In this document: positions 22,501 through 32,499 of the stretch, in pieces
How positions within the stretch are numbered: the first letter of the stretch is position 1
Layout of the letters: each line of letters opens with the position of its first letter
NCBI GenBank assembly: GCA_002269645.1
Contig: NIVC01000868.1
Location: 124,001 to 188,000 of the forward strand
DNA from: Macrostomum lignano
Taxonomy: Eukaryota
Direction of reading: 5' to 3'
Length of the DNA: 64,000 nucleotides
The notes under the pieces: model-generated
Seen by the model: the letters and a program-made list of their open reading frames with translations, nothing else
Database searches by the model: none
What the model was told of the DNA's origin: nothing
Program-made: the position numbers and the translations under genes

Positions 22501-22686
22501 TACGAGAGTATACATATTTCAACCCCTGAGTCCTGACCGACTCAGACGTCTGCTGACTATATATATGTATTAGCTGATATATGTACCGTGGCAAACTAAA
22601 ACGCTTAGAGGACTACTTAAGGATATGGCCGTGTCTATACATGTATCGACTCAAATAATGAGCTTTGAGAGTGAGTGAGTGCGTGC

Positions 22687-22872
22687 GTGTGTGTGTGTGT
22701 GTGTGTGTGTGTGTGTGTGTGTGTGTGTGTGTGTGTGTGTGTGTGTGTGTGTGTGTGTGTGTGTGTGTGTGTGTGTGTGTGTGTGTGTGTGTGTGTGTGT
22801 GTGTGTGTGTGTCTGTGTGTGTGTGTGTGTGTGTGTGTGTGTGTGTGTGTGTGTGTGTGTGTGTGTGTGTGT
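22687..22872. repeat. (GT)n microsatellite, about 93 units
   Basis: Near-perfect GT run with one CT interruption near 22813; resumes at 33369-33396 after the insertion. Confidence 0.97.
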
Positions 22873-24636
22873 TTGTGCATTAGGCATTTCTTGGGACAAG
22901 CGTGTATAAACTGACCCGTGCTATTAGGACCAAAAATGTGTTGGGCCAGGCCCAATAAGTGCGTCCCGACACTTCCAAAAATGAATTCTATTGAAATGAA
23001 AAAATATTCATTGGAACCGTCTTTCGATTCTCCTTTCAAAAATCAATGTCATTTTTTCATATTTTTAATCAAACACGGGGAATCTAATGATTTGCAGTGT
23101 CCTAAGAAGTTTAAAAAATTATGCGAACTGATGGTCTGATCCAACAGAACAATTGGGTCTCAAATCGGAATTCTCGTTTTATTACAATATTTCTTACAAT
23201 ATCAAGAAAGTCTACTACAAGTAACAGATAAAGGTTCCCTACAGGGCTGCCAATCAACACTTGAAAGGATCCACTGACATTTGGCATCGTGTTTACTAAA
23301 TATGAAATAATTTAATACAGATTTAGAATATTACAATCAAGCATACAAACCTTATAGATTTAGTATATTTAGATTTTTGCATAGAAACAGCTAGCATCTA
23401 AATTCATTAGCTTCCAATTTCACTTATACACGAAACATGGCAAATTAAGGTTACATCCGCCTGTGCCCTCGGCCATTTTAACTGAAATTCTCGTTTTCAG
23501 TCAGCTGCATTAATCTATTTGTCATATGTGAATGGGTATTAACTGACTCAAGTTAGTGACTGGAGGCCATTAACGTAAAGTGACACTTTGAGTGAGGTAG
23601 TTTTCCGGTGGAAATTCTCACAGTCTTATGAAGCGCTTTTAGAGCAAAGAAATAAAGGGCAAAGAAAAACTTTGCATTTCCCGAGAAAACCGAGGACGAG
23701 TATTAGAGGGAAACGTTTAATCTCTAAGGCTTTAAATGACTTCCTTATTGGCCTGGGTTTGGGCAGCTATACTATGTAGAAAAATTTTTCCTAGAATTAT
23801 GATAATTATCGTCTGGTATACTGAAATGTACTGAGATACCAAGAAACTTAAGATGACTGCATGGACTGCTAGCACATGTTTGCGTGTCACTGTCACTGTA
23901 AAGTCGAAATCGATGACTAGTTTGGCCCAAAACTAACTACTAGGCCTTCCTGGAAAACAATTCTGCTTATCTTGGATCGTAAAGATAAACCCACGTACAG
24001 TGCAGAAGTGTTAGGACAAGCGTGTACAAGACCCAGGCAATCCCTTACCCAGGCCACGCGTACATTCCTATCGCGGCGGGGGGAAGCGGGGAGGAGAGGC
24101 GGGCGCAAGGGAGTCGGGATAAAGTTTACACTGAAGTTGAGGCCTACAAGAGGAAGAGCCAATTCTAGCGGAAAGGTACATGTAGAAGTTCCCTTTGACA
24201 AACGGCGTACTGGCGGTACTGCATATGTTCAAGCGAATATAATTCATTTACGAGACCTGCACTACACAGACAAAATGTGCCACGTCACAAGAGTTTCCAT
24301 GCATGACCTGGCATGAAAAGACTTGGCTAGGAACCATTACACATATGTAAGTAGAATTTAAAATTCTTTTTAAAATTTTATGATTAAATAAAAACTTAAC
24401 TGGAATTTACATATGTACTTTTCTAAAATTCCAGATACGTTGATATCGATAAGCTACCGTTTTCTTCTATAACAAACAGATTTGCCTTCATTGTCAAGTA
24501 AGTCTTGTCTCGTACTCGTATATGTCGTATTTTTTGTACGTTGAAAAAAATAATAAGCAGCCTAGTAATACTCTGAGCTCAGTGAAATATAAGAGAGGCG
24601 GCACGATCACCTTATTTATCAATTAATTTACAACAG

Positions 24637-30600: not shown

Positions 30601-32296
30601 TTTGTTGGGCATTTATTGGGACATTGCAGCCAGGCCTATTTTTTGAACAGCATTTGTTGGGTCGCACTTATTGGGACAATACTGATTCTAATCGCGACTA
30701 CTTCTGAGTTCTGACTTTTCAAAACAGACCCAGCATTAGTTGAACACGTTCTATTAAAGGGTTCCTTTATAGCCTATTAATGATTACTAAAGCAAGCCTA
30801 TCTTAATTGATTTCTTTTCCTCGCAGATTCTGAAGTCAGCCACGCCAGCGACATGCCTAAGAGACAAGAATGCGCTTTAACGATCAGCAGCGAGCATTCT
30901 GATCTCGCCGCTGCATCCGTCATTTGGTTCACTTGCTGCTCACAAGCCGCAGCAGCAGCAGCAGCAGCAGCAGCAGCAGCCGCTATCCGTGCAGGCAGTC
31001 AGTCTATTTGTGAATTTTCTGGTGGATCTGAAGAAAACCCGTCCGGCACAGGATTAAAGAGAAAGAGACGATCTGTTTTGGGTGAGTATTATCTGCTGTA
31101 GAAGTATTGTACACCAGAGTACTTGTGTTACTTGGTAGAGCACAATTCAAAAGCAATGCAACAATCTCAGTGGCATTGTTGGGACACAAGCTACAAACGC
31201 ATTGAATAGTAAACACAGCCCAGCCTAGCTCAAGGCTAGTAATTTGTTGGGCATTTATTGGGACATTGCAGCCAGGCCTATTTTTTGAACAGCATTTGTT
31301 GGGTCGCACTTATTGGGACAATACTGATTCTAATCGCGACTACTTCTGAGTTCTGACTTTTCAAAACAGACCCAGCATTAGTTGAACACGTTCTATTAAA
31401 GGGTTCCTTTATAGCCTATTAATGATTACTAAAGGCAAGCCTATCTTAATTGATTTCTTTTCCTCGCAGATTCTGAAGTCAGCCACGCCAGCGACATGCC
31501 TAAGAGACAAGAATGCGCTTTAACGATCAGCAGCGAGCATTCTGATCTCGCCGCTGCATCCGTCATTTGGTTCACTTGCTGCTCACAAGCCGCAGCAGCA
31601 GCAGCAGCAGCAGCAGCAGCCGCTATCCGTGCAGGCAGTCAGTCTATTTGTGAATTTTCTGGTGGATCTGAAGAAAACCCGTCCGGCACAGGATTAAAGA
31701 GAAAGAGACGATCTGTTTTGGGTGAGTATTATCTGCTGTAGAAGTATTGTACACCAGAGTACTTGTGTTACTTGGTAGAGCACAATTCAAAAGCAATGCA
31801 ACAATCTCAGTGGCATTGTTGGGACACAAGCTACAAACGCATTGAATAGTAAACACAGCCCAGCCTAGCTCAAGGCTAGTAATTTGTTGGGCATTTATTG
31901 GGACATTGCAGCCAGGCCTATTTTTTGAACAGCATTTGTTGGGTCGCACTTATTGGGACAATACTGATTCTAATCGCGACTACTTCTGAGTTCTGACTTT
32001 TCAAAACAGACCCAGCATTAGTTGAACACGTTCTATTAAAGGGTTCCTTTATAGCCTATTAATGATTACTAAAGCAAGCCTATCTTAATTGATTTCTTTT
32101 CCTCGCAGATTCTGAAGTCAGCCACGCCAGCGACATGCCTAAGAGACAAGAATGCGCTTTAACGATCAGCAGCGAGCATTCTGATCTCGCCGCTGCATCC
32201 GTCATTTGGTTCACTTGCTGCTCACAAGCCGCAGCAGCAGCAGCAGCAGCAGCAGCAGCAGCAGCAGCAGCCGCTATCTGTGCAGCAGTCAGTTAA
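24637..32296 (+). CDS. Hypothetical repeat-exon open reading path through the array (79-aa repeat)
   Basis: Exons 25208-25444, 25833-26069, 26457-26693, 27082-27318, 27706-27942, 28330-28566, 28954-29190, 29578-29814, 30203-30439, 30827-31081, 31470-31721 are all phase 1-1 and open. Leading exon 24637-24819; terminal exon 32109 to TAA 32294-32296; AATAAA 32417-32422. Expression is not shown. Confidence 0.35.
24665..32278 (+). repeat. 624/625-bp tandem array (about 12 units), unit = intron + in-frame exon
   Basis: Unit ATGs at 25234, 25859, 26483, 27108, 27732, 28356, 28980, 29604, 30229, 30853, 31496, 32135. Each unit has acceptor tttcttttcctcgcag| and donor ttttgg|gtgagt. Confidence 0.97.
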
Positions 32297-32499
32297 TTCA
32301 TGAGTTTTTTGGCGGAGCTGGTTATTTTTTTAATTTTCTGAATCGAGAAGCCGATTAACTGCTGTGTGCTTCACTGGAATATTATTTAGAGGACGCATTT
32401 TTTGCAGTCTGTTTCTAATAAAATCCGGTGCAATGACCGCGGTAGAGCTCTAGCATTTGCTTTTTATAGTATTTGTGTATATTCTTTTTCAAGCTATGC

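Follow-up and report, generated by a model that had tools for sequence, protein, structure and literature searches.

A probable DNA transposon with an internal array of spliceable exons beside a disabled orphan reading frame in Macrostomum lignano

Can an inserted array of exons capture the first exon of the gene in which it lands? This question is raised by a stretch of 64,000 nucleotides from Macrostomum lignano (contig NIVC01000868.1 of assembly GCA_002269645.1, positions 124,001 to 188,000 of the forward strand; hereafter, the window). An initial annotation of this stretch had joined a very short putative exon, a junction exon, 11 tandem repeat exons and a diverged terminal exon into one uninterrupted frame. 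It had proposed that an inserted array had taken over the splicing and termination of a host gene, leaving the former second exon to decay. The arithmetic of this proposal is right: 13 nt, 183 nt, the 11 repeat exons and 188 nt sum to 3024 nt, which is 1007 codons plus a TAA. The letters also agree with a host intron of phase 1 and with array exons that are all on the same strand and of phase 1-1, and the AATAAA expected after the frame is present at 32417-32422. With moderate confidence, we favour the reading that the window holds a mobile element of M. lignano with its own spliced array, lying beside a disabled orphan open reading frame (ORF), no functional chimeric protein being shown.

A dispersed block bounded by inverted repeats

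The array lies within a block of ~10.5 kb (22875-33364) that recurs at three further M. lignano loci, at 96-98% identity and in unrelated flanks. We compared the window copy with those on L001, L002 and L003, three contigs of the same assembly that encode three repeat-bearing predicted proteins. Against L001, positions 22852-24639, the array and positions 32569-33375 align at 96.8-98.3%, and the left arm of the block (22875-24636, plus strand) is 96.9% identical to L001 4420-6192. Both ends of the block are present in L003, while the L002 copy runs past the edge of its contig. Similarity ends at the same two points in each copy, and these points are inverted repeats. The left one (22875-22912, plus strand; GTGCATTAGGCATTTCTTGGGACAAGCGTGTATAAACT) has GTTT before it and is where homology with L001 and L003 begins; the right one (33328-33364, minus strand) runs into GTTT and then a (TG)n tract, together spanning 33365-33398. 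The inverted repeat is imperfect, with 29 of 38 positions matching, and its score of 19 compares with a maximum of 13 in 2000 shuffles. As the block recurs in unrelated flanks and is bounded by inverted repeats, the proposed insertion of the array is supported: there are four copies, and their terminal inverted repeats are significant. On this comparison of copies, the array is part of the mobile element.

The motif TTGGGAC runs through this element. It is found at 22891 within the left inverted repeat, three times in each array intron (24917-31953), in each unit of a 38-bp minisatellite (sites 32508-32736) and, inverted, in the right arm at 33313. The minisatellite, with 6.7 copies on the plus strand at 32493-32747, is also present in L001. 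Of the 45 plus-strand sites of TTGGGAC in the window, 44 fall within the element, a distribution which suggests that the array intron and the minisatellite were derived from subterminal repeats of the element.

Regarding its class, Pfam returned nothing for the two left-arm ORFs (94 and 114 aa), the arms contain no long ORF, and there is no transposase-like ORF inside the element; no search for an autonomous partner was made. In each of the three complete copies, GTTT adjoins the inverted repeats on both sides (22871-22874 and 33365-33368 in the window); it either belongs to the element or, given a strong target preference, represents a 4-bp target-site duplication. The L001 and L003 sites are also TG-rich, but the left TG tracts are short there. 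Longer candidates for the target-site duplication, such as TGTGCATG in L001, are inconsistent between copies, and the same holds for duplications of 7, 8 or 9 bp. Judging by its ends and its contents, we take the element for a probable non-autonomous DNA transposon that is bounded by terminal inverted repeats and has a macrosatellite in its interior. A literature search turned up no account of such a satellite or element in Macrostomum.

The macrosatellite is the array itself. It comprises 11 units on the plus strand (25208-31721), each of 624-643 bp and made up of a phase 1-1 exon of 237-255 nt and an intron of 388 nt. The repeat exons start at 25208, 25833, 26457, 27082, 27706, 28330, 28954, 29578, 30203, 30827 and 31470; nine of them measure 237 nt, and the other two 255 and 252 nt. 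All 11 have the borders cctcgcag/ATTCTG...TTTTGG/gtgagt (slashes mark splice junctions throughout). They are followed by a diverged terminal unit whose exon (32109-32296, plus strand, 188 nt) ends in TAA, with the peptide ending ...AAAICAAVS*. This ending is the same in L003, and in L001 the frame continues to ...GRAGYFLSF*. The AATAAA at 32417-32422 (plus strand) is kept in L001, and we assign it to the transcription unit of the element itself, as its poly(A) signal. Copies differ in their number of complete repeat units: L001 has six, L003 nine, the window 11 and L002 at least 16.

Several other properties of the array were recorded. A (GCA)n tract within the exon lengthens along the array in the 3' direction, from 7 alanine codons to 13, 12 and 16 at the expanded positions 30945-30980, 31588-31620 and 32227-32271, a gradient of trinucleotide expansion within the macrosatellite. 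Every array unit also has a minus-strand ORF (24742-31949) of 101-108 aa, beginning MRPNKCCSKNRPGC..., which exceeds the plus-strand exon in length and is retained in L003. No Pfam family scored above threshold for the array unit, the intron, the chimeric N-terminus or this minus-strand ORF. Rfam, searched with the whole window at gathering thresholds and with a single unit at E <= 1, gave no match, and neither did tRNA scans. We considered an array hosting small RNAs and rejected it: the array intron folds like its shuffles (z = -0.19) and belongs to no Rfam family.

Splicing, 5' end and constraint of the repeat exon

The repeat unit matches 30 predicted proteins from transcript-based annotations, all of them from M. 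lignano and with 45-100% identity. The exon-exon junction RSVL/DSEV or RSVL/ASEV is present in 10 of these models, which confirms the repeat-exon acceptor and donor chosen in the initial annotation. Further splice sites can be taken from the models, namely the donors GGCA/GTCAGT and ACCC/GTCCGG and the acceptor cagcag/CGAGC. The same exon is read in more than one frame by 24 of the 30, and the longest model reaches only 247 aa. To judge from these models, the RNA of the element is spliced heterogeneously in its other copies. In UniProt, the repeat-only proteins P0013 and P0022-P0029 are named Dymeclin and UCH, BAF250_C, Rho-GAP or DRIM domain-containing; these misleading names were probably inherited from gene models that fuse the repeat to real genes.

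How does the RNA of a complete element begin? In L001, L002 and L003, ~700 bp lie between the left arm and the array and end in the acceptor cacgcacag/GTTC(A/G)TCCG; the window copy lacks both. Models P0025, P0026, P0028 and P0030 start exactly at the first codon after this native acceptor, and P0025 and P0030 match the first array exon of L003. In M. lignano, 30-39% of genes are trans-spliced to a 35-nt spliced leader that ends in ATG (PMC8629364, PMC5730564). When the ATG of the leader is joined to GTTCATCCG, it is in frame with the four models. Two other acceptors were tried for the donated ATG and rejected, since both put it out of frame: that of the canonical array exon (ATG ATT CTG ... 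TAA) and that of the supposed host exon 2 downstream of the element (ATG CTG CTG AGC TGG TGA). By direct reading of the sequence, only the native first-exon acceptor, absent from the window, puts the donated ATG in frame. We infer that the native RNA of the element most likely begins by spliced-leader trans-splicing at that acceptor. The L003 copy (NIVC01000257.1 6202-16040) lies antisense within the span of an annotated gene for a 981-aa protein with a TIR_2 domain. This orientation, together with the two models that match its first array exon, points to a promoter of the element's own. This implies that the element has no need of a captured host exon and is transcribed independently elsewhere.

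The same comparison accounts for the junction exon of the window (24637-24819, plus strand). This exon of 183 nt exists only because the window copy lacks the ~700 bp that include the native first-exon acceptor; 24640-24665 is the scar of the deletion, and the AG that opens the exon precedes, in the other copies, the segment missing here. Ahead of the acceptor at 24637, the pyrimidine tract is poor (ttaatttacaacag). A little upstream, in the left arm, lies a candidate cassette exon of 63 nt (24435-24497, plus strand; ttccag/.../gtaagt) that is kept in L001 and L003. Read in phase 1, this candidate has a TAA, so its inclusion would break the chimeric ORF.

Is the repeat exon under selection as coding sequence? 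Among 32 units from the window, L001 and L002, 9 of 237 exon columns are variable (3.8%) versus 14 of 388 intron columns (3.6%), and the exon changes fall on codon positions 1, 2 and 3 of the annotated frame in the proportion 3/4/2. Stops or frameshifts break this frame in 13 of the 16 L002 units (with a TGG>TAG change common to 11), in one of the six L001 units and in one of the nine of L003. No homologue of the repeat was found outside M. lignano. The exon thus shows no sign of coding constraint in these alignments, and its translation is possible.

These counts bear directly on a different explanation, in which the array would be a true, fast-evolving coding family carried on duplicated segments. 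In that case, Cys-containing secreted peptides would be cut at the dibasic sites KRKRR and PKR from a polyprotein that is functional whatever its 5' exon. Such a family could explain why the frame is open in 24 of the 26 units of three arrays, why a symmetric exon undergoes (GCA)n length changes that preserve the frame, why some models are labelled 'Secreted protein' in UniProt and why the diverged unit of P0027 retains the frame. However, the exon varies at the rate of the intron with no excess at third positions, most of the L002 units are broken, the frame changes within 24 of the 30 models, no domain or homologue beyond M. lignano is associated with the repeat, and the window copy lacks an N-terminal signal-peptide exon of its own. 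We consider a functional coding family very unlikely.

The putative host gene

What remains of the proposed capture depends on the DNA on either side of the element. The putative host exon 1 (22658-22670, plus strand) is 13 nt long and consists of MSFE plus one nucleotide, with its donor in phase 1 (ATGAGCTTTGAGA/GTGAGT). Its support comprises an ATG, a consensus donor (A/GTGAGT) at the start of a (GT)n microsatellite (22671-22870) bordering the insertion on its left, the phase and a TATA-like box; TATATATA is located upstream, at 22558-22565. An alternative in-frame ATG at 22625 would extend the exon to MAVSIHVSTQIMSFE, and the GT-rich tract holds a second GTGAGT donor at 22675, whose phase is 2. 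When the 300 nt upstream are shuffled, 20% of the shuffles contain an open, ATG-initiated mini-exon in the required phase. Given a phase-1 intron, the array would match its phase with a chance of ~1/3 and lie in sense orientation with a chance of ~1/2, jointly ~1/6, and ahead of the array the open frame extends over 39 nt with exactly one phase-compatible AG. A single 79-codon unit, repeated with hardly any change, gives all 11 repeat exons, so the long ORF should be weighed once and not eleven times. The 1007-codon frame goes beyond chance only weakly.

On the other side lies the ORF that had been taken for host exon 2 (33408-34346, plus strand), with ~222 codons and an internal in-frame ATG at 33488. 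The initial annotation had described a TGA and a LINE in it, and both are there: an in-frame TGA at 33791-33793 and, at 34032-34288 (plus strand), a 5'-truncated 3' fragment of a non-LTR retrotransposon, 257 bp long with a (GAA)n tail. The fragment has a weak zf-RVT match (E = 0.02) and is flanked by 12-bp target-site duplications (AGTGGCGCTCAG, at 34020-34031 and 34289-34300). When it is excised and its flanks are joined, the frame is restored as far as a TAA at 34344-34346. Because there is only one stop in ~222 codons, compared with 4-17 in the other five frames, the sequence favours the view that this ORF is a former coding region. Pfam searches with pieces of the ORF gave nothing above threshold, a word-indexed search of 5.8 billion proteins yielded no homologue, and no annotated M. 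lignano protein corresponds to it. Exhaustive matching with phmmer did return giant repetitive proteins aligned over many short stretches; we read these as low-complexity or coiled-coil similarity and rejected them as homologues. Further downstream, an ORF at 35416-35775 (plus strand) has a hydrophobic N-terminal segment and ends at a GT donor (GGGCAG/gtatga); it likewise has no homologue among the 5.8 billion proteins.

It could be argued that there never was a host gene, that exon 1 and the downstream ORF are both non-genic and that the element landed in intergenic microsatellite DNA. The failure of both protein searches and of the M. lignano annotation to recognize the ORF would fit such a scenario, as would the orphan status of its neighbour at 35416 and the stop and LINE that the ORF already bears. 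Non-genic DNA would hardly be expected to keep so few stops in one frame relative to the others, to recover that frame across the empty site of the LINE, or to encode protein-like helices and a hydrophobic hairpin. We find the absence of any host gene quite unlikely.

The proposal that started this analysis goes further in the opposite direction. In it, a host promoter would drive exon 1, which would be spliced to 24637 and through the array to the AATAAA at 32417. The result would be a gene trap, possibly with a 1007-aa protein, and exon 2, starved of transcripts, would decay. Much of what it needs is in place: the frame arithmetic is correct, the same-strand insertion is genuine, annotated models employ the splice sites of the array, the poly(A) signal is shared with L001, two in-frame ATGs and a TATA-like box lie upstream, and exon 2 has its stop and its LINE. 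Yet the junction that defines the proposal, MSFE/TNHPAS, is absent from all 30 repeat proteins (none contains MSFE, NHPAS or CIYN), and exon 1 is an event expected by chance in a fifth of shuffles. In addition, the host ORF has its own in-frame ATG and lacks both homologue and annotation, the strong candidate exon at 24435-24497 would bring a stop in phase 1, and the pyrimidine tract before 24637 is poor. Taken as a whole, we judge this proposal unlikely, if worth keeping in mind. Its bolder version, a transposon-borne exon cassette with a poly(A) signal that was fused to a host first exon and is translated as a 1007-aa polyprotein with dibasic processing sites, a case of de novo gene birth, strikes us as highly improbable.

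The claim that the insertion redirected splicing and termination can thus be divided. The same strand, the compatible phases and the poly(A) signal stand; the chimeric gene is unsupported, with no MSFE junction in 30 proteins, no sign of constraint on the exon and a junction exon that holds the scar of a deletion peculiar to the window copy. A functional chimeric 1007-aa gene is unlikely. The same strand, 12 consensus acceptors, 12 consensus donors and the conserved poly(A) signal mean that the element could trap a transcript that enters it, so a gene-trap effect is plausible should exon 1 be transcribed.

We therefore return to the mobile element as the reading that we prefer. The element would have a transcription unit of its own, leading from the left arm through the ~700 bp with the native acceptor into an unstable array of 237-nt exons and 388-nt introns, from 7 to more than 16 units long, then to the diverged terminal exon and the AATAAA. 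The copy in the window lies within TG-microsatellite DNA, directly before a disabled orphan ORF, and has lost the ~700 bp together with the native acceptor. The long frame would then have three sources: a very recent amplification of one open phase 1-1 unit, a chance phase match to a hypothetical 13-nt exon, and a lucky AG at the deletion scar. Should both exon 1 and a promoter ahead of it prove genuine, the element, lying in sense orientation, would work as a gene trap of natural origin.

Several points weigh against this reading. The TG richness of all sites and the GTTT beside every copy obscure any target-site duplication, and no transposase partner was found, so that the transposon class is only probable. 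The selection tests draw on ~3% divergence and nine exon substitutions. The frame is open in all 11 units of the window, in eight of nine in L003 and in five of six in L001, and lone frameshifts could be errors of the PacBio assembly, so coding capacity is possible. The unit of P0027 is only ~53% identical, yet it is open in the same frame. Finally, exon 1 may be spliced into the array of the window.

The rest of the window is of another composition. An AT-rich core (18-36 kb) lies between GC-rich regions (1-18000 and 36000-64000, GC content 0.49-0.66) that contain dozens of different minisatellites, and composition changes sharply at both borders. One of these minisatellites, with an 18-bp unit repeated 334 times at 48464-54367, has a GC skew of ~0.66. 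Within the core, a pair of 106-bp inverted repeats (19072-19177 and 19448-19553), 96% identical and ~270 bp apart, could be a small foldback or MITE-like element.

Significance and comparison with known systems

The event itself, a repeat element inserted beside a decaying orphan ORF, is ordinary in a very repeat-rich genome. What deserves attention is that the macrosatellite of a dispersed element forms a complete exon-intron module with its own terminator, which is expressed and variously spliced. As a consequence, the element pollutes the protein catalogues of M. lignano with dozens of "uncharacterized" or "secreted" proteins, and recognizing the family would help to clean the annotation of this species. 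Moreover, elements of this kind can behave like gene-trap cassettes provided by nature, and they can supply material from which new coding sequence arises.

One close parallel is found among non-autonomous DNA transposons with terminal inverted repeats and internal satellite or macrosatellite expansions. Like them, the element has imperfect terminal inverted repeats, a motif (TTGGGAC) reiterated both subterminally and in the array, several copies at 96-98% identity in unrelated flanks, no transposase ORF and a variable internal copy number. Unlike them, it has internal repeats that each comprise an entire exon and intron with consensus splice sites, and a poly(A) signal of its own follows them. 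We regard the element as a previously undescribed, probable transposon with an internal tandem array, here of spliceable exons.

Tandem exon-intron units are also known from genes. The kringle IV-2 variable number tandem repeat of human LPA resembles the array in being built of phase-symmetric, near-identical exon-plus-intron units whose number varies while the frame is always kept. However, LPA is a single-locus gene whose repeat encodes a conserved, constrained protein domain, whereas the array of the window has no domain or constraint, gives frame-switching isoforms and resides on a dispersed element. The SNORD115/116 arrays, with a non-coding exon and an intron that holds a small RNA, share with the element the tandem exon-intron unit, the heterogeneous RNAs and the lack of a consistent frame. 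In contrast to those arrays, the unit of the element matches no Rfam family, and its intron does not fold better than its shuffles. Intronic transposable elements that act as gene traps, and the engineered cassettes that do the same, likewise combine a sense insertion with strong acceptors and a poly(A) signal, as does the element described here, which lies between a putative first exon and a downstream coding exon. It differs from known gene traps in that the trapped gene is hypothetical and has no homologue.

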